Positions 3,285 through 25,849 of a stretch of 64,000 bases of DNA are shown here, piece by piece (position 1 is the first letter of the stretch; the number at the start of each line of letters is the position of its first letter). The stretch lies in the NCBI RefSeq assembly GCF_000002075.1, contig NW_004798018.1:52541-116540 (forward strand), read 5' to 3'. A program made the position numbers and the translations under genes. The notes under the pieces are model-generated. The model ran no database searches. It had not been told where the DNA came from and saw nothing but the letters and a program-made list of their open reading frames with translations. The stretch comes from Aplysia californica (taxonomy: Eukaryota).

Positions 3285-3655
3285 GGGGTGCCCTTTGGCG
3301 CGATCGGGTCAGGTCCGGTCGGGTCGGGTCGGGTCGGGTCGGGTCGGGTCAGGTCGTTTTCTGCCTCCGCGATTGTACCCGACGACCTGGAAGTTAAAGT
3401 AGACCGGAAATGCCTGAACTTGACATCGCAGTGTCAACATGGACACGTGACTTGTAGGTTACAAAGCCTTGTTGTGACTGATTGCAAACCACCCGATCGC
3501 GCGACTTGCAGACTTGAAAACAAACGCGTTTGTTTTTTAAAGTCACAGACCGCGTCGATCAGTTTGTGCCACGATAGCCGCAATTGACCCTCAATTTGGC
3601 TAGCCTCGACTACCAACTTGACCCGACCCGACACGATCGCGCGAATGGGCACCCC
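3285..3655. mobile_element. PIF/Harbinger-like MITE with an internal (GGTCG)n repeat
   Basis: TIRs GGGGTGCCCTTTGGCGCGATCG / CGATCGCGCGAATGGGCACCCC; left flank TAA. Confidence 0.7.
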
Positions 3656-3738: not shown

Positions 3739-3917
3739 GTGGGTGATTGGCGAGTGTTCTAGTGTAGTTTGCTCCTTCTTTTGTTTTTATCCAGACATAT
3801 GTTGTCCTTATATCCCCTCCTTTTTGTGTTTGATACTCTTTTTGAAACACATCTAATATTCGGCACTTATATGATCTAATTGCGTTGCAAGTGCCGTAAA
3901 ACTCTTAGTAAAACTAA
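3739..3917 (+). repeat. ~180-bp short retroposon family, copy with TSD acagtaaat(c/a)g
   Basis: Starts GTGGGTG(G/A)TTGGCG; ends in a hairpin plus (ACTAA)n. Confidence 0.75.
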
Positions 3918-6900
3918 ACAGTAAATAGGCTTTCAGAGCCAAATGAAATGAACCACGCTACCAAGTGGTCGGCGGGTACAAACGGGCGTTGATGACAGAA
4001 ATTCTCAAATGATGAACTTGAAAGATCTTGTCATTGTTCAGCATTTGAACGCCTTTTAGATTGCGACCTGCAAATACATTTCGAACCGCACCTGATATTT
4101 TGACAACTTCTCAGTAGTGACCAAGCTACTATCACTAAGAATATTTGACATCTTCTTTGAAAACAATTTGGAAACTTCTTAGTAGTAACCAACCTTGTAA
4201 GAATATCTCCTGCGGCTACTTCCGGGTACCTTTGAGTCTGGAGTACGTACACAAATTTGGTCATTAAGCAAAAGTCTGGGAGGTTTTTTTTGGTTGTGTT
4301 GTTGTTGTTTTTTTAGTGGGGTTCTTTCACTTAAAAAACAACTAACAACAACCTGATAAGAAAGAAGTTAGTAAGGAGAAAGAAAAAATCAACTTTCGGC
4401 CACAGAGGGAACGTACGGACTTTGTGTCGGTGTAGTTCAGTGCAGGAGATCAATCATCGTAGAGAACGCTTGAAGTGCGTGTGGAGTGCGGAGTGCGCGC
4501 ACCAATACACACCACGTGATTTGGCCAGAGCAATGATGATCAACGGAGGAACCCATTGCCCTTTGGCACTTGCCTTGTCTCCTGGGTCTGATTTTTTGTA
4601 AAGAGGAAGTCTCTCGGAAACTAGGTCATGACAGTCTGTGTCGAGGGGACAGGAAAGAGTGATTGGTGCACTGCTGAATCCACCACTACATCTTCCCTGA
4701 ACACTGCAGGGTTCATGCAACTAAACAAGCAGTAGACTCGTTATGAAGAGGTAGTTTTTTAGAAATAATTGCCGCAATTTGGAGTATTTAATTTGTTGGC
4801 CAAGCTGATGGACATTTGGCAAAGAGTATTTTTCTGAGAAGACGTTGGTGTCTGTCTTGAGCGCCTACACTAATGGCTTTACTTTGTTTAGTATCACCTC
4901 ATTGAATTTGGCCGTTTTTTGTGCGTTTTAGTACAGGCTACAGGCCTATATATTGACATTTAATGACAACTGCTCTGACACCCTCCCCTCTCCTTTTCCT
5001 CCTTTCGAGGTACTAAGACACTAAGAGCCTTTATTTTCAGTTTGAAGTATTGGTCCTCAAAAGCCTTAGGCTACTGAAAAAAATGCAGTTGATCAAAGAC
5101 CAAACTTTCCGTACTTGCTGGTTTACCGCAAAGAAAAAGTTATCGTATCGTACAGTACAAATAATTTGTGGCGGGTAGCCTGAGGGATACATAGAGGGTT
5201 TTAGAGTCCACGTCTTGAGGGTCTGGGGGTGTTTGCTTTAGATGTAGGTCTATACATATTGACGGTTCTGGAAAGAAAAAGAAATATTCAGTGCGGGTAC
5301 TTTTTTTTACGAAGGGAAATACAATATAACGTCTTTATGTGGATAACACATTTGTCGATAGAAGAGAAAAAAAAACAACTAAGATTGAGAATTTTTTTAA
5401 AACGAGAAATCTCGCCGATCTTGGGGTGTTAACATATTTACCTTGATTAGAACGGCTTGAAAGAGGGTAAGCCCATATTTCGAAACTGGACTGGGTCCAT
5501 TTGATCTATCCGAGTGAAGGCTTCAGAAGGAAAGAAAAACGAACGGTTTTTTTAAAATCTTTTCGCTTTACAGGTATGCAACATTCTCTTCTCATACAAC
5601 GACAAAGAGCCCGCGTTGTTACACCTCATATGTCGGTGAACCTAAAACAAACCAGCCAACTTTGAAGTAAATGAATCGTGAACGTACTTTTGTGTATACA
5701 TGTACAACAACGGCGATACCAGTAACTTAAAAAATCAAAATTTATTAACTTCTGTTGCATATTGCACTCATTTCTTTCAAAATCTATCAATCTCAGAATA
5801 ACAATCTCCGCCAATTGTGAGACGTTTTTTCATAACTTGGGGAGCGATTAATCAACAAAACTGTCTTGCCGTTAAGAAAACAACTAAAACTAAATATACA
5901 TTTTATGCTTAACTTAAAACGATCGTCCAGGCTTCCTTCTCTGAAAATTCAAATTCAGGTGCACCACATACGAAAATGGAATACGAGGAACGTATTTGGA
6001 TAACCCGAGCGTAAAGCTTTTAAACGGGGAAGATGGAGAATGTGTTATGGTTGAATCCAACTGGTCCCTTACACCTATTATGATAACCTAGGACGTCTGT
6101 TTTGGGAAGCATAAAAAGTTTAACTCAAGACACCAGATGGATCTCTCCTCTGTGTGAGGTACGGAACAAAACGTTCTCAACAGCAAGGCTGTCCCACGAT
6201 CTGGGTTTTTTTCTGGGTTTTTTTTTTTTAAATTTTTGTAGAAGTTTTTTTACGGCGCTCGCAACAGCATACGGTCATATGAGCGCCAAGGGGTGGATGT
6301 CAACAGAAAAGTCCTTACAGGGAATCGGGCTTACTCTGCTCACCTCTCTAGCTTCAACAGCACAAAGTCTGCTTCGATTATCATCAAGGCACCCCGGAAA
6401 TAGCGGGTCACAAGAGAGTGCCAAATACCGTATACAAAAGAAGTACATGTAGAGGGAAAATGACGAGGTGGGTGCTACGATCTGTAGGAAGTCATGTGAC
6501 TCTTGTACGGGGAGTAGGAGCAGACTTTGTTCTCATTATCTCAAACACGCAAAATGTCTCAGGATTGTCCATGACGAACTTTCTGAACAAGACTGTTATT
6601 GCGCATAAATGAATTGCAACTGCAAATATTATAGTAGACCCACCGGTAATTTCAGAAAAAGGCACATTAGAGAATTCATGTACTTTGAAAAAGGAGGGAT
6701 GGGGGTTTGTTTGGTAAGTGTTTTACGGCGCTCGCAAATAAAGCATTTTGAACGCGCAGAACACATTAAACATTTTCAGTTTGGTTGGAATCAATTGAGC
6801 ACGAAGGGCTCTCTAACATGTGCAACTTGCACATGGGACCCCCGAGATTTTTTGCCCCTATCCAAGAAAGCTAGGTACTAGATCTTACCTACCCTAAGAT

Positions 6901-12935: not shown

Positions 12936-15900
12936 CTGCGCCAGAAAAAAAGACAATACAATTACTTAGCGATGTACATATAAAAGTCATTATTACTAGA
13001 AAAAGTAATCACAGGAGGAAATATTTTTGGTTTAATCTATTCTGATTCAGTAAAACCAAACAGAAAAACACCTGTCTTTACCAATTCTACATTTTATCTA
13101 TTCACTAACATCTCATATAAAATCTAATGAGTCAAATGACAAATATTCAGTTAAAACAAATTACTGCACAAAAGCCAACCAAGTCAAAACTATGACAAAA
13201 GCGCAAGATGTCATCTTGGATAATTACCAAAATTTTACGGACCAATTCTTTTCAAGGCTAAGATGGATTACTACAATAACACTTAACAAACAATAACGAA
13301 TAAAATGAAATATCATTTACCAATAATCTGGTTTTGGAATTGGAATGTCGTTGCCCTCGTATTTGTCGAGAAGTTCTTGGTTCCTTTTATCTAGCTCCTG
13401 GAAAAGGAAAAATAAACTCATTACTAAAGAACAATATAATGTGTCAAAAATAGCTGTGCAAAGTGCAAGTTGGTTGACTTTCAGTTCTCTCTCGAAAAAT
13501 CAGAATTATAATAATAATAGTTTGCTTGTCAATGTCAGGCGATGACCAATGCATCTGCAAACGAGAATATTTTTTTAATGAAACACAATTAATATAGGTT
13601 AAGATGACTTGTGGCTTCTGCTATGGCCAATGAGACCAATGCTGGCTGAGAAGTGTTCACTACATTTTCAACATTCAAAAGTTTCAATTCCACTCATGGG
13701 TGGATGCACAATGCTTGGACTTCTCTCTTGGCTTCCGCATTTTTAATGCAAGGAAGATCAGAAAGTATGACTATAAGAATATACTTTATAAAAACTTGAT
13801 AAAAGAAGCAAGTCAAGTAATTCATAAGGTGAACAATATCACAGGAGCTGTAGTTGTTATTCACCCCAAACCAGCTGAACTTTCCCCCTTCTATTTGTAC
13901 AGTTCAACTCCAACCATTTTGACAAGAGATTTGCAAAAGACCATCAGAAGAAAACAGCAAGACAAATGGAGAGACTTCATCAGGAGGTGCTGTTTTAGTT
14001 TTAGTAGAAGTTTCACATCATTTGCAATACAAAGATAATATATAAGTGTGGAAGAATAGAGATGTAATAAAGAAAGAAGGAGGAAAGATAAGAATGATAG
14101 ATGTTTGATAGGATAAAAAGAGCAAACCACATCTGAGCATCCACCAACTAACCACACTGGGTATCGTTTCATCACAACAGACTACGTCTGCTGCACTAGT
14201 TTACACTTCCTGTATGATGACGGCACATGTGACTCATAAATTAGACCAATACACGCTACATAAGTTGGTTGGCTGCAGAGAGCACAAGGGGAAAAAAACT
14301 AAACCTTCTGCACTCTGTTAAGTCATCTTTTATCTTTACTTTACTTTTGTCCGCCGCTTATACCCTTTTGGTGTCTCGGGAAGAAAGAGATGTCTCTCTG
14401 TCGCCAGCCGGAGAGCTTGGGTCAGGGGGATGTCGTGAGTTGTTAATGTTTCCCTGACTCCATCTATCCAGGTCTATTTCAGTCGCCCTCTAGTCTTGTT
14501 GCCACTGAATTTTTTTATGTAAGCACGTTGTGCTGGGTGGTGTGTTGGTAATCGCATGAGATGTCCGAACCATTTATCATCTTTAATCATTTCAGAAATT
14601 GCATAAATGTCTTCGCTTCAGACTCCACTTCTTTCTCCTTTGGACTGATCTTACCGTCAGTTCCCAGAAACTTAAGTGAACTCTGAGCTACCTGATGGTG
14701 GGGAGAATTTATAAATAACTAGAGAAAAGTGAACAGAAACAGCGTGTGACCACACACGCCAGGTTAGCTTCTAAACCACCTGCCCCAAACAACAAATGTT
14801 ACACAATTCAAACTTCCAGTGATCACCTCTCGGTTCTTGATGAGAGTACTCTGTTGGCTGACAACTGCGCCCATCTGGCTAGTGCGTGGTCTGGAGTGGA
14901 AGTACTGGGTCGATTCTGCCTCCGACACTCGCTCCACTCTGCCTTCTATTCTTATCTAAGGACAGAGGAAGCAGTCTTAGAATTACAACACCAAAATGTT
15001 AAAAGAATATCATTTTACCAAATATTTTTGATATAACCTTATCTCTTTTATGCCTCATGAGGTACATGTACTTAAATGGCACATAAGAATGAACAGGCAG
15101 GCAGAAGGACTTATCATGAAACAGTGAGAGCTTCCGAGATTATACAACATGACAATAGATAAGCATTTAAATTTGAATTTGAACTTTTTTGAAACTCTTG
15201 AAAGTCAGGCATGAAAATTCATTATTTCAAATCCAAGTCCAGAACTTTCCATTGCATTTTGACCTTTATTCATCAGACACTCACGAACCCAGTTAAGGAC
15301 AGAAAGAAAATATAAAAAGCATTAGTAGCTTAATCAAGTTCTATCCACAAATTTAGGACCATTGGAGGTTAAAAAAGTACACAGTTTATGAAAACAGAAA
15401 CAAATACACTACATCTTATGTTGTGGTATAAGAAACAGCAACACTCACCAAGTGCAACAAATAGGTACACAGTACTTCCAAAAAGTAACTAAAACAAGAA
15501 ATACAATTTTGTATCTACTTTGCTATGGATCTATTTATGAGTCAGCAAATTTGGCTACGAAGAATGAGTAGATGTATAACAAAAGGTGAGGTTGCAACTA
15601 GATCTCACTCACTACCCTTCTTCTCATTTAAACACCATCCAATCAAAATATAAGGCTTATAATATCTATACCATAAAAATTAAGTATGAAATAGTCTTGC
15701 TGTCAACAAAAATACCAATATAATGCACTGCCCCCTCACAAATTAAATGATGCCCAAAACCATGGCTTCTTAAAATTACAAAAAGTCCTCTCGGTGACAA
15801 TGAGGTGATGGGAATGTAGCCTTCTGAGGTATCTGCTGTAAATGGAACATCTTGGCCATAAGCCTCCACAAAGACATGTATTGCTAGCATTTTTCTTCCC

Positions 15901-18900
15901 CAGATCACAAGCAAAGCAATAAAAAAAAAATGACAGCCTTACTCACCGATTTCATAAGCGCCTCCCAGTAAAACATTAAGCTACAATTTGGATTTTCAAC
16001 CTGATATGCCAAGGAGATAAAACAATAAGGAAAAGAGAAAAGTTAATGCCAAGTCATAAACAAGTAAAAATACTTAATATCTCCACTCGTCAAAGACCAC
16101 ACATAAATTATGAACAAAATGAATGGAAATCGGTGGTAAATAAAAGTGGGAAATTTCAGGCCAAATAATTTTACGATATAATTCATAAACCATTTTTGGT
16201 TCGCAATTTGTGTGTGATTTTTGCCAGGTTTTTTACACAAATGTGACTTTGGACATGAGCTGAGGAGAGTTATGTGCTTGTTGCTTGTCCTACCTTGCAC
16301 TAAAGTTCGGCCATTTTGAGGAAATAAAATTTGTGAATTTTTTTCTTATGATAAGTCCATTCCTAACTTCCACTATTCAACATTTGCTGCCTGTACACAG
16401 TGCTAGTCACTGAGCGCTCTTGTGTTTTCTCGCACACAGTGTAATGCAATGTTACATCACTGCTCATAATGCTTCGAATTTTAAATAGGGAAAGGGGAGC
16501 TCATTGCGACAGGTACTGTTAATTTCATGAAAAAACATTTGTTGTGCTTCGAGAGTCAATAAATGCTCTTGTTCGAGCAGTTAATGATGTGGCAGGTGAA
16601 TATTGAAAAGTAATGAATACTCTTTAGAACTTAGAGGCATCTTTTATAATTCTTGCAGGTTCCACTTATCAAAATATTTTTGTATTAACCTCGATGATTT
16701 TAGTTATAGTATGCTCTAATTATACTAGGGTTTGTGAGAAATGAGAGGGAAGTCCATTATCTGTTAAAAAAATATATTTAAAAAAAATAAATCTTAAACT
16801 CCCAATAAACAACCAATAAGTATTCGAATGGCTTTGCCATGCTTTGAATAGCTGTGAATAACGCAAAAATCATGGATGCTGAATAGTGAAATACAATTCA
16901 ATAGGCACAGCTCTACTTTGCACTGAGGGTCACAGTTCTACTTTGCACTGAGGGTGATGCTGTAACACATATGCAGAGATAACAGAGCACTGCACACAGG
17001 CTTACTTTTTCTATATTACTTTATTGAGTCACCTTAAAATTAATTTTATCCCACTCCCTTTGCTTTTAGTTCTAGTAACCCAGACCCACTCTACTGTTGT
17101 CTGTGGCATGTCTTTGAGCGAAGTTGGAGAAACTGAGAAACCAAAGTACTAGATTTACTAACTCATTTTTTCTTAACTACCCCAAAATTACTCTTTTTCA
17201 AAATGAGTAATCCAATCTTCCACAGTAAACCCCCTAGATATCGAAGTCATGTCCAGCCCTCCCTCACCACCAAACATCTCCTCTCCCACAACCCAACTCC
17301 CTAATCAGCATAGTTTTCAAGCATTCAATTTTTCCTTTTACTTTTCCAATTCAATGACAATCTATCCAAGAGAGATAAGCCCTTCAAACTGGTGTGCAAA
17401 GTCACATTTGCATAAATTTATAAAAAAGCATTCTGTGTCATCGTAGTAGACAAAAGAATAAGTTTGAAGTGTTGGAAGTTACGTATTTACCTGCCTGCTA
17501 ATGGTGGAGGTTTCAGAATTAGTCGACAGATAGAAAAGTAGAGAGGCAAATGGATTTTCCTCCTGTGATTGAGAAAATGGTACAAATATTAATGTACACA
17601 CGCGAAGAAACAAAATGAATTACTACTCGGATTCAAGCCATAAGGAAATAGGATACATCACGTTGTAAGTGAAGTTTTTACAGTTTATACATGAAATAAT
17701 AGAACATTGGTTATACTTAAAGAATATGGAATCAATAGAAAATCTACAAATTTGACCCAAATGTTGATTATTGGCCAATATCTCCATTTGTGGACTGCAA
17801 GAAGTAACTCATTTTGTCGGCACACCTTGCACATCTCTTCGCTTTTCACATATTTGTTCTTTTTTGCATCAGGTATGTTGTATAAAATATAGCACAGAGA
17901 AACAAACAGACACAACAGACGTGTGAAATACAAGTGAGAGAAAAATTAAACTAGGAGTAAGATTTCTTGAGCATAAAAGATAGTATAAATCACATCATAG
18001 CTTCTATCAATACTGCAATAAGAGACAATATCAGTTTCAGCATTCTTTACCATACAATCTAATCTAAAGGAGATCTCCTTTAAATAGACAGATAAAACTG
18101 TTCAAAGATTTGAAATAACTAGAGATTTTAGGACTTACAAGTTCTTGGGCTTTTCTGCTTCCATAGTTTGTGTAGAACACGATTCCCTTTTTGTCAATGC
18201 CCTTCATGAGAACCATTCGAACAGAAGGTTTTCCATCTCTGGAGAACAATAACAATGATGATAATAATGATAATTAATAACACTAGTAATAATAATATAC
18301 ACCGCATATCTCTATGCTAGAAAATCGGCTCCATGCACTTCATAATCTATACATATTATATGTGTGAAAGTTCTTCACTTTGGCCGCCTAAAACTTCCCA
18401 ACCACTGAACTTTCAAATTTTACAAAATTAACGGTGGTTCAGAATCATTTAAAGGGTGCACAGTTAAAATATGCAGTCTGAAGTCCCTGTAGTTTAATTT
18501 TCAGTTTTTCATTAGTTTTGTTTAGATCTAATCTTGGGAAAGTTCGTCTTCTTAGACGCCATTGTAAACAAGTGAGAGGTCCGTTCACAAACAGTGCATA
18601 CTGGTTCAACAATGACTTGGCGATCGATTCTTTTGAGTCCGTTCATCGCACGAGGTACCCAGCTCGTTTATTAATACCCAAACAAATCCTACAGCATTAC
18701 GAAATGTTTTGAACTTCTTTAAAAGAGACTATAATTTTATCTGTGCACTTAAGCACGGAACAAGCAGGCTAGGATGCATGTTTAGCATGGTAAAAATGAA
18801 AGTATGTGGGAGTAAACATGGTGGTCAATGAATTTTGATTCAACAAAAATAAAACTCTTTTTTAACTAGCCATCAAAATCAATTTGTTGTTTTAATTTGC

Positions 18901-21900
18901 AGGGGGGGGGGGGGGATAAAAGGGGAACAAATCTGTTTTATTTCTCCTTCAGTGAATAAAAGAACAAGAGATCATGAAATTTTAGTGATTTTTGAAAGTT
19001 ACTGTGACAACTTGTCCCATTTAGGAACAAACCAGTTTCATTAAAAAATATAAACCAATGTACAAAAGTTTTTAAAATGTGCAAAATTGAGGTAGCCAAC
19101 TCGGTACCGGTAATAATACTGAGGGAAATTTGCCATTTACAACAAGAAAAGAAGTTTCATTCAGATATCGAGATTCTAGATATAATGTTTCACATAACCG
19201 GCTGTCATGGCAAGTTGGAAAATAATAAACAATGAGAAACAAGAGTGATAAATTAATCCTTGAAAAGAAATCTAGGTTACAAATAGCTGGTATTGGGGGA
19301 ACAAATGTCAATAAACGTAATTACCAGTACTAGTGTCTTGAACTCTCTGGCTTATAATTATAGGCAGGTAGGAAGGCCCTCCTGTTCTGTATCCCCAAAT
19401 GACAGCACAATATATATTTATTCTATAAATTAGTCAAAATTATATGTCCAATCTACTGGCTATGTGGGTGAGTAACCTGGCTGCAGTCAGAGGAAAGCAT
19501 GAAGACCTTCCCCCAACTTGATCACCCAAGAAGCCATGAGAAATAATAATAATGATAGAAATAAAAATGATTAACTGCATTAGCATTCAAATTTGCCCAA
19601 TTTTAATTTCGACAAGATGCTCAGAGTAGATTACAATACAGTAGGTAAAGCAGACATAGGCACAATATAAAAAATCCTAAGAACAAAAAAAACCAAACGA
19701 AACAAAAAAAAACATTTACTTCAAAGACAACACAAAGTTCCACATACTTGTACATTGATAAAAATCCACTATTACAATTAACAGGAAAATAGACATAAAA
19801 ATGCAAATCAGTACATATGTAGAAACACAGTTAGACGTTAAACATGTTCATGGTTGACAACTCACAATAAGAGAAAGAATGAGTCTACTCGTTAAATAAA
19901 AGCAAATAAAAATGCTTTATGGTTGTGAAAAGAAAACCATCAAATTACGAAATGGATCAGTAGTCACCCTCGGGTTATGCAGTAAGTAAAAATATCATGA
20001 CCAGCATAAATATATAGCCAAGCAGTAGGAGAGCCTGAAAACCCCTCAAGTTCAAGATTATGCTCTGTACGGGATTCAGATCAGGGTTTTAAGCAGAGCA
20101 CAGCACTAGCGGAATGATGTCGAAATCCCCCGCTGGAAGAGCAAAGGGTAAGAATATAAGCAGAACAGCACAACTGGCAATAAACACTCACTTGGTGGCT
20201 GTGGCAATGGCCATTGCATTGGCTTCCATAATCCCATCTGTATTCTTGGCCTCCTCAAACCACGCTGTGAACTGTCCAAAAGGCTCCTTAGCCACAAGGT
20301 CGCCAACATCAAAGACTTCTTGTTTGCCTTTGTAAGGCTTCCTCATTCCTGCCAAATGAACAATTTAGACATTTCATGCTCAAAATCGATCATTATTTAT
20401 GTACCTTCAAACTGAGTACGTCAAAATGTAGACAAACAACATATCTGAAACAAAAATATTTTTAATAATTACCATCAAATCTTACCACCTACGTTGACAG
20501 CACATTGTCAAAGAGACAAGACATTAGCCAACAGGGGTCAAATTTTAGTGCTCATGTCCAGTCCTTTTTATAAGAGAAATATATTGATAGGCATGATGTG
20601 AACAATTAAAGTGCCATTTCAGTCCGATCAACTGATTTCAAGTCAACTAAATCTCTTTAAAATTGTCAAATGTGGAAGGCAAACTTAAAAAACTTTTCAT
20701 TAGCTATCAATAGGACCCATTAGAAGTTTATAAAAATTGTAAATTTCATCACCTTTCGTCAGCAACTTATAGAACCCATTAAGAGTTTTTAAAATACAGT
20801 CGAACCTGAGTAAGACGGAATCGCAGGGAAGCCAGAAAAAATTCCGTCTTAGAAAGGGAAATTTAGAGGAAGATGGAAATGGGTCAGCAGGTATTGGTCA
20901 ATCTAATTTCACACCTCTGGCTTCTGGCTACCCACGAAAGTTTCCGTAGTGGCTCGCTACTCAAGCACTCTCACGGGCAGTCGTGAGATTTCACACCCAC
21001 ACTACCCTGACAATCTACATCGCTCAGGGCTCACATGATGGGGTAACATCTACCCCCAAATTGCACCCCTACTCCCCTTCCTCGTCTAGCGGCATGGCCA
21101 TGACATTAAGTTTAGAGCCGGCGGAACCAAACTTAAAAGTTTTTCAAATCAGAGCTGAGCGGGCAAAGCATTTTCCATCTTAGACAGGTGAAACCCTCGG
21201 AAGGGAGCGGATTTTTCTTTCCGTTTTCGCTATGGACAGGTTTCTGTTTTATACAGGTAATTAAAGAGGAATATATCAAGGGGTGAGCGGGGAGATTCTG
21301 TTAAGACAGGTTTCTGTTTTATACAGGTTCGACTGTACTGTATATTTCAGGCGTGTGCAGGAGACACACCAAAATGGTGAGCAGGAAGAGAAAATATGTT
21401 GTATACAGAAAATGCTTAACTGCTCCTCGTTTAGTTTTAGTAGAGGTTTTACAGCACTCGAAACTGCATAAGGTCATATGAGCGTCAAAAGATAAGAGGT
21501 GTTACAAGAGAGTAACAAACATAAAAAAGAAGGAGGGAGATAAGGACGATATAAGTTTGATAGGAAAGGAGAAGCAAACCACACCAGAGCACCCGCCAAC
21601 CACCCACTAACTGCTCCTAACACTGCTAAGATATTGTTGAGATAGAGATAAGTTGGCCCTACTGCCTGCTTAGAAGTGTAGGTAAAGAAAATAAGTTTGA
21701 TTTCACTTTTATCAGATGGTGAAAAAGTGGAGGCATCTTAGTACCTGAGACATTCAGCAGCTTATCTGAACCATCTCCCTCTTGATTTCTTGAGCCACGT
21801 CCCACATTAGAAAACAGTGTCCTGGCTCGAAAGCTGGTGAACAAGTCTTTTCTATGTCTGCTACACACAAGACACAACCTAACAACACTTCGCATTGTTT

Positions 21901-24900
21901 ATTTTAGAAACTCTGCAATTAATCTCTCGTCTTTTTAACAAAGCATACCAGCTGTAGAAGAAACAAAAAAACATTGTCACACAATTAAAAGTCGTTATAT
22001 AGAAAAACATTTATTTTTCAAAAAAGAATCTTTTATCCCTGAGAGAGAGTCATAAAGTCTGTGTTTTTCGTTTCATCTTAGAAATGGTCTGGAATCGTTT
22101 AACGTCAGCACAAAGACGAATATATTTGGTGGGGGGCTGTGCAGAGTAATTTTGTCAAGGGAACTGTAACTGTTGTACGGAATCGGCAATCTAATTGTAT
22201 AAATATCGTTAAAAAGTGTGCGGCTCTGACAGTGCGCAGCTTTGATATTTTTTTTCTCAAAAGAGCGCAGCTCTGATAGTTTCCCGCAGCAAACAATATG
22301 CAGTTTGATCCCCAAAGCAGTGCATCTGTGTGCGGGAGTGAAAATAAAAATTTACCATAATAGGAAACAACGAGAAAACCATATCACCAGATGACTACCC
22401 TACTAGAGCACACATGTCAACCACCTACATATAGAGTAGCGGCGGGGTTGTGCGATAGGGGGGTCTGCGCGGCAACCTTGTAGTATGAACCAATTTAAAC
22501 ATGCTAGAGCGTTCCAGCATTTATCAACATCCGGCAGCACCTTTTCCTGTAGTACGAGATTATTGGCAGGTCACTGTGGTTGCTTATTGCACGTACACAG
22601 AGGCAAATTATTTCCAGGTTTGCTGATTACGTATTCTAACGGTGTATCGGCCTGCAGTTGTAAGGCTGTCAATGCATTTTATGAAGATGTGTATACTTGC
22701 ACTACACACAAAGCAGTGTGTTCTGCATGTAGCATCAGTACTAAGCAAAGCACGGACCCTCTCAGCCTCTCTGAGGGGATGGATGGGGGTTGGCGCGCAG
22801 TGCCGCCACGGCGTCTAGTAAGGCGGGGTTTCGCGTCTCAGACCTCTGCAGCGAGAACGGGGCAATATTATATTGCATCAAGGCCCACAACAGCCACCTG
22901 ACACAGCCTCTGTACCAGGCGTTTTTCGGGGCCATTATTAAGCCAGCGTGGCGAGAGGGGGTAAGGAAGTTTGTGAGGGACACCACGGAATCCGTCACAC
23001 TGAGGACGTTCGCCGGCGTCCTGAATTGAAGGCCTGGACAACAGTAGCTCGGCTAAAAACGGCCCTGAGGGGATTCCCCAAGTCAGGGCTGTTTTTCTAC
23101 AACCCTGACGTGTCCTCACAAGTGACAAGCTGAACCCAGCTGCACCTTAACAGGATCCCCTGCCCCTACCCTCCACTTGTCATCCACCTCGTCTGCCTCT
23201 GCCCCATCCGCCTCTTTTGCTTCTAAACCATCCACGACGTCACAAACTCGGCGTCACCGACTCAAGGAAATATTCTCCATGAACTTTAAGCTTGGGGAGG
23301 AGAAAGTTGACCTGTACCTCAAGAGGTATGACAATGGATATGACCTCAAGATCGACCCCAACTACAACATATGGTCCAGCCTGATGGACAATATTGAACA
23401 ACTGACTCCTCCGCTCCCTCAGCCATCAGCAAGAGCCCTGAAACCTCAGACCCCCACCGGGGAGATGACTATCGACAAGGTGCTCACATTTCCGTCCTGT
23501 TCAAAGAACAAGTCCGTTAGAAAGCCCCAGCCACCTGTGCCATTGTCCATCAGTGGAAATGACTAGAAAGAGATGATACTCACAAAGAAGAGGAAGGCGG
23601 AAGAAGAACAACAGCAGAAGGAAGAGAGAAAGAAGCCAAGGGAGCAGAGAAAGATGGAACGGCTAGCACAAGCTGAAGACAAGAAGGAAAGCCAAAAAGA
23701 GAAGAAAAAACGAAGGGAGCAGGCAAAGAAATAGGAGGAGAAGAAAAGGAAAATTCAAGAGAAGAAGATGAATGCTTTGGTTGTGGCCTCACAGAAGAAG
23801 AAAGAGGAGGAAGATTCCTCTGACTCAGGAGAAGAGCCGGTGTACGACGACAGCTCGGACGATTGTGGGGATATTACGGTCGACTGTGCTGGATGTGGAG
23901 CCACCACCGCAGGATAAGTAGTGCTCACCCAGTGCATGCTTTGTGACAAGTGGTGGCATGTCAACTGTGTCAAACAGATGGACCTGAGGACAAGACTCAG
24001 GAAGACCTGGATGCCATGGACATTGAGCTCTTTTGCTGTGCTAACTAATCTCTCCTTCCCATTTTGTTTCATACTAATAGTGTAAACAATATCTTTGTTT
24101 ATCCATGTGCAATTAGATCCACATGTCTCTACTTTGCTGTTCTTATATAATTTAAATCAAGTTTTCAGGGTTATCTAGACTCACTAATAGATTACTGTTT
24201 CCATTGTAAGTGTTGGCTTCAGTTATTTTTTGTTTTCTTTCTCTTGTGGCTATGCATAAAAACAGAGTGTCTTTTGTAACTCTTAACTCTTGTGCAATTT
24301 GTAAGAATATTTCCGGCGTTGTGGTTAGAAAATCATACGTTAGCCTATAAGATTCATAATAAGAAGTTATAAGGACATGTTGCAAGACCCGCCCTATCCT
24401 AGCGCGCAGCCCCTCCATAAAACGCGCCACCCTCAAGCAGGAACGCGCACCCCTGCTCATTGTCGCACACACCCGCCCTCACTTTGCCTCACAAAAAACC
24501 ACTACTAAGGGAGACAGGCAAACAAAGCAGGCATAGCGCGCTGGGCCAACGATAGCAGACGAAATTTGCTTCTCATCAGTTATTATGCAGTTACCTCCCC
24601 TTTCACCGGGGTCTAGCAAGGTCACTTTTTGTGCTTAGGGTAGCCCAGACTACCTCCTCTACTCTAGCTAGAGCACTGTTGAAATGTAAAGCACAGTAAC
24701 AGAATGAAAGCTATTGATATCAAGAATCTACACATTATGTTTCAAGGGGTGACAGGAATAGTACAGGTACTTTTTAAAATCACTGAGGGAAAAGTTCTAC
24801 ATACAACAAAATTAAAATAGAGGTCATACAAAACAAAAATGCCTGAAATGGTAAGATGTAAGCTTGAGTTTTAATTGTCAATTGAGTGTTCACAATCAAC

Positions 24901-25501
24901 AAGTAAGCCACTATAAACTCTTCTAAAAAGTTTGTCACTTATTAGTCCTTCCTTGCACAAGTTTTACTGAAATTAGATAAATGCACATGTTTAGTTATCC
25001 CGAGCTGAGGACGTGAGTGTAGATTTGGCTTTAGGAATTTTAGTGAAAGTCGGTTTGTTATACAACTTATCCTTTAAAAAGGCCGTCGTTATAAAAAAAA
25101 AAATCCTTGACGAACAATTTTTAACAAAAGTAAAATTTTAAGTAAGCATGCATTCTTTTCAAATTTCAGGGGAGTGTCCTTTTACACATAGCATTATCGG
25201 GCAGACACTGCGACTTAAACTTAAAGACTAGATCTAGATCTATTTCTGTGCTGGTATAATACATAACCCCTCTACTGATTTTACAAAGCAGAGCACACAA
25301 TACATAATAAACATGCCTTTGTGCATGGAGAAATTATACAACATGTCATGGCCATGGGCAAGGAAAGGCATTGGAGTCGGCTAGCGTATCTACAAAATTA
25401 CAGTACATATATTGATAATCTGTAAATTGAAGTAGATAAAGAATCTTTTTATTTAGTCTAAAACATCAGAGGGAATTACCGGCAATATCAAGATTTGCCA
25501 T
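12770..25501 (-). CDS. PNPO: Pyridoxine/pyridoxamine 5'-phosphate oxidase, spliced gene (about 234-283 aa depending on isoform)
   Basis: Coding exons in transcript order: 25480-25501 (alt first A) or 21745-21895 (alt first B); 20192-20348; 18139-18238; 17491-17562 (alt 4a) or 15947-16000 (alt 4b); 14827-14955; 13321-13397; 12770-12935. All are GT-AG and phase-compatible. Family motifs: [73 protein letters not shown]. Confidence 0.96.
13321..13397 (-). CDS. PNPO: PNPO exon ([26 protein letters not shown])
   Basis: cag acceptor and gtaaat donor; 77 nt; phase 0/2 fits neighbours. Confidence 0.93.
14323..14690 (-). mobile_element. Decayed RTE-type LINE 3' fragment in a PNPO intron
   Basis: Minus-strand translation gives LKFLG...[10 protein letters not shown]...RGR..TWIDG, followed by a (GTAAA/GATAAA)-like tail. 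Confidence 0.55.
14827..14955 (-). CDS. PNPO: PNPO exon ([36 protein letters not shown]...)
   Basis: tag acceptor and gtgatc donor; 129 nt; conserved YFHSRP and SQQS motifs. Confidence 0.95.
15947..16000 (-). CDS. PNPO: PNPO alternative exon 4b ([18 protein letters not shown])
   Basis: cag acceptor and gtgagt donor; 54 nt; phase 0/0; matches the family NPxxSLxFYWE motif. Confidence 0.9.
17491..17562 (-). CDS. PNPO: PNPO alternative exon 4a ([24 protein letters not shown]), paralog of exon 4b
   Basis: ttttctcaatcacag acceptor and CAG|gtaaat donor; 72 nt; phase 0/0; open frame; NPFASLLFY...RQ matches the same PNPO segment as 15947-16000. Confidence 0.8.
18139..18238 (-). CDS. PNPO: PNPO exon ([33 protein letters not shown])
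   Basis: ctccag acceptor and gtaagt donor; 100 nt; FMN-binding motifs. Confidence 0.96.
20192..20348 (-). CDS. PNPO: PNPO exon ([35 protein letters not shown]...[12 protein letters not shown])
   Basis: ggcag acceptor and gtgagt donor; 157 nt; phase 1/2. Confidence 0.94.
20797..21335. mobile_element. Tc1/mariner (Tigger-like) MITE
   Basis: TA-CAGTCGAACCTG ... CAGGTTCGACTG-TA. Confidence 0.8.
21428..21607 (-). repeat. ~180-bp short retroposon family, copy with perfect 11-bp TSD taactgctcct
   Basis: TSD at 21417-21427 and 21608-21618. Confidence 0.85.
21745..21895 (-). CDS. PNPO: PNPO alternative first coding exon B, mitochondrial presequence-like ([29 protein letters not shown]...LLNVSG)
   Basis: ATG in acaATG context; CAG|gtacta phase-1 donor in frame with the next exon; upstream acceptor ttcttctacag at 21952; Arg/Ser/Leu-rich N-terminus. 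Confidence 0.7.
22434..24484 (+). mobile_element. Decayed pogo/Tigger-like DNA transposon (DDE_1 C-terminal part, K/E/R coil, PHD finger) in a PNPO intron
   Basis: [28 protein letters not shown]...KPAW and [13 protein letters not shown] are DDE_1-like. CAGC...[12 protein letters not shown] is PHD-like. Frameshifts and stops present. Imperfect TIRs gtagcggcggggttgtgcga / tcgcacacacccgccctcac. Confidence 0.75.
25480..25501 (-). CDS. PNPO: PNPO alternative first coding exon A (MANLDIAG)
   Basis: attATGG start; CCG|gtaatt phase-1 donor; acceptor ttttatcaacag at 25556. The joined LDIAGMRKPY resembles the family D-x-A-x-x-R-x-x-Y N-terminal motif. Confidence 0.75.
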
Positions 25502-25849
25502 AATAATGTTGTCCAAAGATTGTCAGTCCACAAGCCACAAACTGGTTTTGCACAGCTGTTGATAAAAATAAAGGTCAGAGGCTACGATTATAAAAACCAG
25601 ATTTTTCTAGAAATAACAACAAGTGAATACAAAAAAATAAGCAATTCACGGGCTTAGTAACTCATTTCCAGGAGTTTCTCTGACTTCTAATGATTTATGA
25701 GGTATGTAATTAGTTTGCAATATTATTTCTTATAGAAGTAGATCTACGTGTTAAATAACCAATTTTTTTACACTCGGATAGCACGCTACAGAAAATGCTT
25801 ATACAGTTTGCCTCAATCTGGGATACTAGGCTAACCCGGATGTTTTTGT

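Follow-up and report, generated by a model that had tools for sequence, protein, structure and literature searches.

The PNPO gene of the mollusc Aplysia californica possesses two adjacent homologous versions of its fourth exon, 4a and 4b, and assembled transcripts contain one or the other of them. This exon pair is ancient and no local oddity of Aplysia. About 150 enzymes rely on the cofactor supplied by PNPO, which is regarded as a single-form housekeeping enzyme. That molluscs, nemerteans, annelids, and farmed decapods have retained a second form for over 500 million years implies that it serves some purpose so far missing from B6 biochemistry. The type of splicing event is well known and both Aplysia isoforms are already present, unremarked, in automatic annotation; new are the evolutionary depth of the pair and its host enzyme. 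The original prediction, made from the DNA letters, held that an alternative exon 4 had not been described for PNPO, and none was found in the full-text literature, in which subscription journals are mostly uncovered.

Two versions of exon 4 in the Aplysia gene

A search of 927 Mb in 4,332 contigs identifies one PNPO locus in Aplysia californica, which is situated on the minus strand of the window, i.e., the whole stretch of 64,000 nucleotides analyzed here, and the exons of three RefSeq isoforms of this species all map into this window (Table 1). The automatic RefSeq isoform X3 (P0312, 240 aa) contains 4a, and isoforms X4 (P0287, 234 aa) and X2 (P0286, 277 aa) contain 4b. A second PNPO gene or a mis-assembly is ruled out by the single genomic locus together with the matching layout in three other genomes. 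Re-derivation from the DNA confirms both exons at their predicted positions, with AG acceptors, GT donors, phase 0/0, open frames, and the predicted peptides, and a scan of all open AG..GT/GC candidates of 45-99 nt in the gene yields 4a, 4b, and boundary variants of these as the only exon-4-like segments. Exon 4b aligns to residues 123-140 of human PNPO, and the segment encoded by 4a is equivalent to residues 122-139. The proposed tandem duplication is borne out by the adjacent position of the two exons, the equivalence of their protein segments, and their compatible phases and splice sites; within one species, 4a and 4b share about 50% of their nucleotides.

Table 1. Exons of PNPO and the intron between exons 4a and 4b in the Aplysia californica window.
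Feature	Position	Strand	Remarks
Short first coding exon	25480..25555	-	ATG at 25501, 7 codons; used by RefSeq X3/X4
Long first coding exon	21745..21951	-	ATG at 21895, 50 codons; used by RefSeq X2
Exon 2, constitutive	20192..20348	-	Transcript contigs and mapping
Exon 3, constitutive	18139..18238	-	FMN-binding RMV..K and SRK motifs; donor common to both choices
Exon 4a, alternative	17491..17562	-	72 nt, phase 0/0, donor CAG/GTAAAT; long-hairpin form
Intron 4a-4b	16001..17490	-	1,490 nt
Exon 4b, alternative	15947..16000	-	54 nt, phase 0/0, donor TCG/GTGAGT; canonical-length form
Exon 5, constitutive	14827..14955	-	Acceptor common to both choices; starts with the strand bearing the R141 equivalent
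Exon 6	13321..13397	-	Mapped from P0287
Exon 7, last coding, with stop codon	12770..12935	-	One match in genome

Expression was examined in four runs aligned to positions 14750-20450, as contigs for X18 and X7 and as raw reads for X21 and X23. The contigs of X18 contain four GT-AG joints by which each exon is spliced to exons 3 and 5, as expected for the predicted use of one exon or the other. Both joints of 4a (18139>17562 and 17491>14955) have a depth of 12.2, and those of 4b have depths of 26.5 (18139>16000) and 20 (15947>14955), a difference that matches a contig running from 4b into the next intron (5.5). By contig depth, the ratio of 4a to 4b is about 1:2 in X18, with roughly one third of the signal for 4a, and the 4b path (64.3) is the only one among the joints listed for X7; as contig depth is poorly quantitative, this difference between X18 and X7 hints at regulation and is no measurement. 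X18 is without an RNA record, yet its joints fall exactly on splice sites and therefore stem from spliced molecules. The raw-read runs X21 and X23 have zero depth on exons 4 and 5, from library bias or silent filtering, and hence give no junction counts.

Neither a joint between 4a and 4b (17491>16000) nor a skipping joint (18139>14955) is present among the joints listed for X18, whose contigs drop rare forms, and the depths of exon 3 (33.9, close to 12.2 + 26.5) and of exon 5 (30.1, close to 12.2 + 20) leave little room for skipping or co-inclusion in X18. The proposed mutual exclusion thus agrees with the joints from Aplysia, but isoforms with both exons are on record in other species. Exon 4a is spliced and is conserved in relatives, which rules out a decaying pseudo-exon at the level of the lineage, and constant co-inclusion of the two exons was not seen.

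The two first coding exons both join exon 2 in phase 1. The first exon of 50 codons, with 8 Arg/Lys and 1 acidic residue among its first 34 residues, resembles a mitochondrial transit peptide, and contig ends fit use of the long first exon in X18, where the match extends to 20351, and of the short one in X7, where it extends to 20349. Mitochondrial and cytosolic human PNPO arise from alternative start codons (PMC12718117), whereas Aplysia seems to use exons for alternative PNPO N-termini. Between the two first exons, a GC-rich (48%) stretch at 22780-24050 contains degraded coding-like sequence and is probably a transposon remnant.

Distribution and age of the exon pair

Segments of the 4a type, defined by the pattern NP..SL.FYW[ST]..N....SRQ, occur in the snails Physella and Lymnaea, the ribbon worms Tubulanus and Lineus, the annelids Owenia (27 residues) and Dimorphilus (25 residues), and the decapods Penaeus, Scylla, Portunus, Eriocheir, and Macrobrachium. 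Most of these taxa also have a canonical 18-residue isoform on record, and isoform pairs are known from Lineus, Owenia, crabs of the genus Scylla, and four Penaeus species. As expected if the pair extends to related genomes, it is also found in DNA, where an exon of 72 nt is followed by one of 54 nt in Penaeus indicus (L005:3401-3472 and 3769-3822), in the nemertean Tubulanus (L006:2964-3035 and 3304-3357), and in Physella (L012:5732-5803 and 6130-6183). Order, lengths (72 and 54), and phases are identical in Aplysia, Penaeus, Tubulanus, and Physella. In addition, an intronless environmental contig (L013) represents a spliced gastropod-like transcript with 4a alone, which has 80% identity to the Aplysia 4a protein. 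For P0080 and P0156, annelid-type or unplaced and known from proteins only, the long form alone is on record. The unplaced proteins P0156 and P0018, from 9-kb contigs, have an intermediate 4a-type segment of 20 residues (FYWS...SRQ), and conserved motifs are altered in P0018.

A search of bacterial and archaeal genomes with the 4a-type DNA pattern gave no match. No candidate for exon 4a was found in the gap-free PNPO regions of a dragonfly, a spider, a starfish, and a hemichordate, and protein records hold no 4a isoform among the cluster members for Mytilus, Mizuhopecten, Pomacea, Biomphalaria, and Hyalella. Exon 4a has apparently been lost often and is therefore dispensable in many lineages. 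A region search with shrimp 4a yielded 14 candidates, all of them from decapods, and is uninformative for other phyla; the Lingula locus (L007), which is without the exon-4 region, and contigs L002-L004, which stop before exon 4, have no bearing on the distribution.

Over the 16 alignable core positions, 4a segments are 71% identical to each other and 4b segments 69%, compared to 55% between 4a and 4b, also within species. Aplysia 4a is identical to shrimp 4a in 15/24 residues and to Lineus 4a in 17/24 (whole protein 63%). Selection had been proposed to act on both exons: a pN of 0.33-0.45 for 4a and 0.25-0.48 for 4b in the face of mostly saturated pS is purifying in kind, but dN/dS is not usable. 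In AU tests with alignments of 18 or 15 columns, which leave the insertion out, separate duplications in each phylum are rejected (p = 2e-5 and 6e-4, respectively), separate duplications in Spiralia and in arthropods give p = 2e-4 with 18 columns and a borderline 0.05 with 15 columns, and a single 4a clade is not rejected. With per-phylum duplications rejected, the protostome ancestor most likely already possessed the pair, and as far as so tiny an alignment can tell, one protostome origin is very probable. A convergent origin of the long exon in spiralians and in decapods, which would place the pair after the protostome ancestor, is rather improbable, although tandem exon duplication is commonly convergent (PMC9741552), the insect and spider genes checked are without 4a, and the AU value with 15 columns is compatible with such a course. 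Both groups agree in position, order, length of 72 nt, phase, donor type, and C-terminal motif of the exon, and the 15/24 identity between Aplysia and Penaeus as well as the AU value with 18 columns likewise argue against an independent origin.

Under a single origin, one duplication of exon 4 of PNPO would have taken place in the last common ancestor of Spiralia and arthropods or earlier. Of the two copies, the one upstream would then have gained an insertion of 6 residues (7-11 in the annelid type), by which the short W-E-P-L turn was converted to a longer β-hairpin, and the downstream copy would have stayed at canonical length, with splicing normally taking one copy of the two, as in the Aplysia contigs.

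A similar case is the Ca-α1T/cca-1 exon pair, which is common to arthropods, nematodes, and molluscs (PMC9741552). Like that pair, the one in PNPO consists of tandem homologous exons of the same phase with one per mRNA, is ancient and conserved between molluscs and arthropods, and is absent from the deuterostomes checked. In contrast, its host is a small soluble metabolic flavoenzyme and not an ion channel or a muscle protein, its copies differ by 6 codons, and products with both exons are in frame and on record. PNPO is not mentioned in the tandem-exon survey (PMC9741552) and constitutes a rare soluble-enzyme addition to the short list of duplicated exons common to Spiralia and arthropods. 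Vertebrate-type PNPO genes have one exon 4, whereas Aplysia has two, and the exon boundaries around residues 122-139 of human PNPO are as in Aplysia.

Other exons of PNPO have duplicates as well. In the hemichordate Glandiceps talaboti, which has one exon 4, exon 3, encoding an FMN-binding strand, is tandem-duplicated (L010:2415-2520 and 2870-2975, approximate positions) and its copies are used by isoforms X1 and X2, a separate duplication within the same gene. Isoform X1 of Mercenaria mercenaria has two consecutive exon-5-like segments (P0280 vs. P0310), and a comparable variant at the start of exon 5 is seen in proteins from Elysia and Plakobranchus (P0323 and P0304); exon 5 is possibly a third duplicated exon of PNPO. 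In Aplysia PNPO, neither a second exon 3 nor a second exon 5 was found.

The exchanged segment and the function of the isoforms

Human PNPO and E. coli PdxH (TIGR00558, PF01243 and PF10590; PDB 8QYT, 1NRG, and 1G76) have the same fold as the Aplysia isoforms. AlphaFold monomer models without FMN are confident for both isoforms (pLDDT 93.9 and 95.1). The 4b model has a strand at residues 98-105, a helical three-residue turn at 106-108, and a strand at 110-120; the 4a model has strands at 98-108 and 113-126, forming a β-hairpin that is three residues longer per strand and is without the turn. The insert of 6 residues predicted for 4a is thus confirmed by its length (24 vs. 18 residues), by a six-residue gap in the human entries aligned to 4a, and by the longer hairpin in the model. 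The 4a model superimposes on human PNPO (8QYT) with Z 28.4 and rmsd 1.0, its barrel being intact. Both isoforms score above the cut-off of the pdxH profile (240 bits for the 4a isoform vs. a cut-off of 180), and a search of the ESM Atlas gave PNPO matches only, all below 0.8.

The Gln139 encoded by the exon had been taken for an FMN ligand and is indeed listed among the FMN and substrate residues of human PNPO, as an FMN contact (PMC10969823). It is, though, the sole listed FMN contact inside exon 4, and since the remaining FMN and substrate residues are all encoded elsewhere, are common to both isoforms, and are alike in the human enzyme, the idea that the two isoforms differ in their FMN or substrate sites is overstated. 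The 4a isoform possesses equivalents of E77, K100, T111, Q139, R141, Y157, R161, S165, Q174, and S175 and also of W206, E217, W219, R225, H227, and R229, and positions equivalent to the allosteric site (PMC10804683) are common to 4a and 4b isoforms. R141 neighbours the exchanged segment, and the exchange R141C raises the Kd for FMN about 100-fold (PMC7424515).

Ser in place of Gln139 is not peculiar to 4b, as had been thought, for the last residue is Ser in 80 and Gln in 77 of the 171 distinct canonical 18-residue segments, Ser being found also in starfish and dragonfly with their single exon 4, and in Physella both exons encode Gln. RQ ends all 17 distinct 4a peptides and SRQ 15 of them, with the crinoid P0155 left out because its extension is of another kind. 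As Ser is an ordinary state at position 139, the longer hairpin of 4a is the distinctive change; it occurs in none of the 267 canonical segments sampled. The reported loss of Trp from 4a applies to Aplysia, which has Leu, but not to 4a in general, for the W133 equivalent is present in 171/171 canonical segments and in 16/17 4a peptides, including the related transcript L013. Codon 12 of Aplysia 4a (at about 17530, minus strand) is CTG, at a position where every other 4a or canonical segment has Trp. CTG is two base changes away from TGG, which makes a single sequencing error unlikely. Judged from this comparison of segments, the change from Trp to Leu is recent, and Leu at this otherwise invariant position may reflect a local decay of Aplysia 4a.

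Because every listed catalytic residue is shared, both proteins are most likely, on the basis of their sequences, FMN-dependent PNP/PMP oxidases. Form 4b would be the housekeeping type, as its exon is the sole one retained in dragonfly and spider. Form 4a would be a tuned variant, in which the FMN-contacting Gln is always kept and a surface hairpin lies beside the strand crossing the FMN/dimer cleft, and the added hairpin would alter how tightly FMN is bound, how stable or mobile the dimer is, or how partner proteins are contacted. That both isoforms are B6 oxidases, of which 4a is tuned in FMN affinity, dimer behavior, or partner contacts, is the reading that we favor, with some reserve. Two proteins that differ by one hairpin offer a clean comparison for that surface of PNPO with regard to FMN binding, dimer dynamics, and PLP hand-over. 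A more far-reaching view, which we regard as rather doubtful, is that since the protostome ancestor splicing toggles PNPO, according to tissue or condition, between a B6 oxidase and a second enzyme or adaptor; the putative second job might be the conversion of a further substrate, 6-NAD(P)H for example, or the selection, by means of the hairpin, of the proteins that receive PLP.

A specialization of the 4a isoform for another substrate, e.g., metabolite-repair oxidation of 6-NAD(P)H, seems quite unlikely. It would be in line with the oxidation of 6-NAD(P)H by PNPO as a side activity and with related enzymes that retain that activity alone (PMC8669784), and the conservation of a pattern of its own in 4a for more than 500 million years is beyond the expectation for a neutral loop. 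The 6-NAD(P)H oxidases of the Npun_F5749 type (TIGR04026) and PhzG share the split-barrel FMN fold with PNPO and provide a precedent for substrate change, with identities of 15% and 31%, respectively. However, the residues binding the PLP phosphate and the ring are all intact in the 4a protein, the TIGR04026 profile gives 27.8 bits (cut-off 220), a score not raised by 4a (PhzG, 153/270 bits), 4a isoforms score below 4b isoforms on the Npun_F5749-type profile in 3/3 species, and the closest structures are PNPOs, with PNPO-related proteins far lower (Z 16.7 and 14.2). Similarly little weight is given to 4a as a weakly active or inactive subunit that dampens PLP output via mixed 4a-4b dimers, or as a scaffold. 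PNPO is obligately dimeric, both chains contributing to its FMN and substrate sites (PMC10969823), and in Aplysia 4a another residue takes the place of the invariant Trp. Isoforms with both exons (P0410, P0411, P0443, P0313, and P0296) and with neither (P0389) are recorded, whose transcripts would contribute to the damping, and a mutation of the human exon-4 acceptor leaves activity undetectable (PMC3999720). Against a damping role, the equivalents of R138 and Q139 are kept more strictly in 4a than in 4b, the 4a model folds with high confidence around an intact barrel, and the protein records of P0080 and P0156 hold the long form alone.

It is also improbable that 4a and 4b are nearly equivalent and kept by partitioned expression or drift, the difference between the proteins being irrelevant. 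The repeated loss of 4a, the commonness of both Gln (77/171) and Ser (80/171) at position 139 of sole enzymes, and the ready duplication of PNPO exons (exon 3 in Glandiceps and apparently exon 5 in Mercenaria) would be expected from equivalent copies. In contrast, the length of 4a is fixed at 24 residues in molluscs, nemerteans, and decapods, with a conserved S/T after the Trp and a conserved (S)RQ end, while 4a and 4b of the same species share only about 50% of their nucleotides. These features are difficult to reconcile with equivalence, and redundancy would hardly have allowed a second copy to persist for so long.

Choice between the two exons

Steric exclusion had been discounted in the original prediction, and this conclusion stands. 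The intron between 4a and 4b, which has 1,490 nt in Aplysia, measures 268-326 nt in Tubulanus, Penaeus, and Physella, all donors are U2-type GT, and 72 and 54 are both multiples of 3, leaving every combination in frame. Intron lengths of 268-1,490 nt, ordinary GT-AG sites, and a preserved frame thus eliminate steric clash, U2/U12 incompatibility, and NMD as means of exclusion. In the docking-site/selector exon clusters of the Dscam1 type, exons are too distant for steric exclusion. Aplysia PNPO resembles such clusters in exon spacing but differs in showing no intron pairing above shuffled controls and no conserved intronic words. The RNA pairing that had been considered did not materialize in Aplysia, where no intron pair exceeded its shuffles in a weak test that scanned for 40-nt duplexes, with 8 dinucleotide shuffles of each intron pair as controls. 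A few intron pairs from Physella and Tubulanus beat their shuffles, with no common pattern, and neither conserved intronic words nor TGCATG elements are common to the introns of the four species.

The two donors differ consistently across the four genomes: that of 4a reads CAG/GTAA and has no G at +5, and that of 4b has G at +5 and T at +6. This difference may make 4a and 4b unequally dependent on splicing factors; the exonic CAG is also the Gln codon. Isoforms with both exons are on record for Physella (X1 and X5), Macrobrachium (X1), Scylla olivacea, and one marine transcript (P0296), and the isoform with neither exon is from Tubulanus. Such isoforms, in which the core hairpin is duplicated or deleted, may be noise or model artefacts. 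An exclusion that is enforced neither sterically nor by U2/U12 incompatibility or frame is probably leaky, and the choice is most likely set by protein factors; the different 4a/4b ratios between samples point to regulation by splicing factors.

Introns 2 and 3 of the Aplysia gene contain interspersed repeats at 17700-17830, 18340-18660, and 18920-19200, where contig depth is very high, and one intronic interspersed repeat lies about 140 nt upstream of the 4a acceptor. In Physella, five short tandem repeats that resemble the last codons of the gene are situated right after the PNPO stop (L012:7446-7692).
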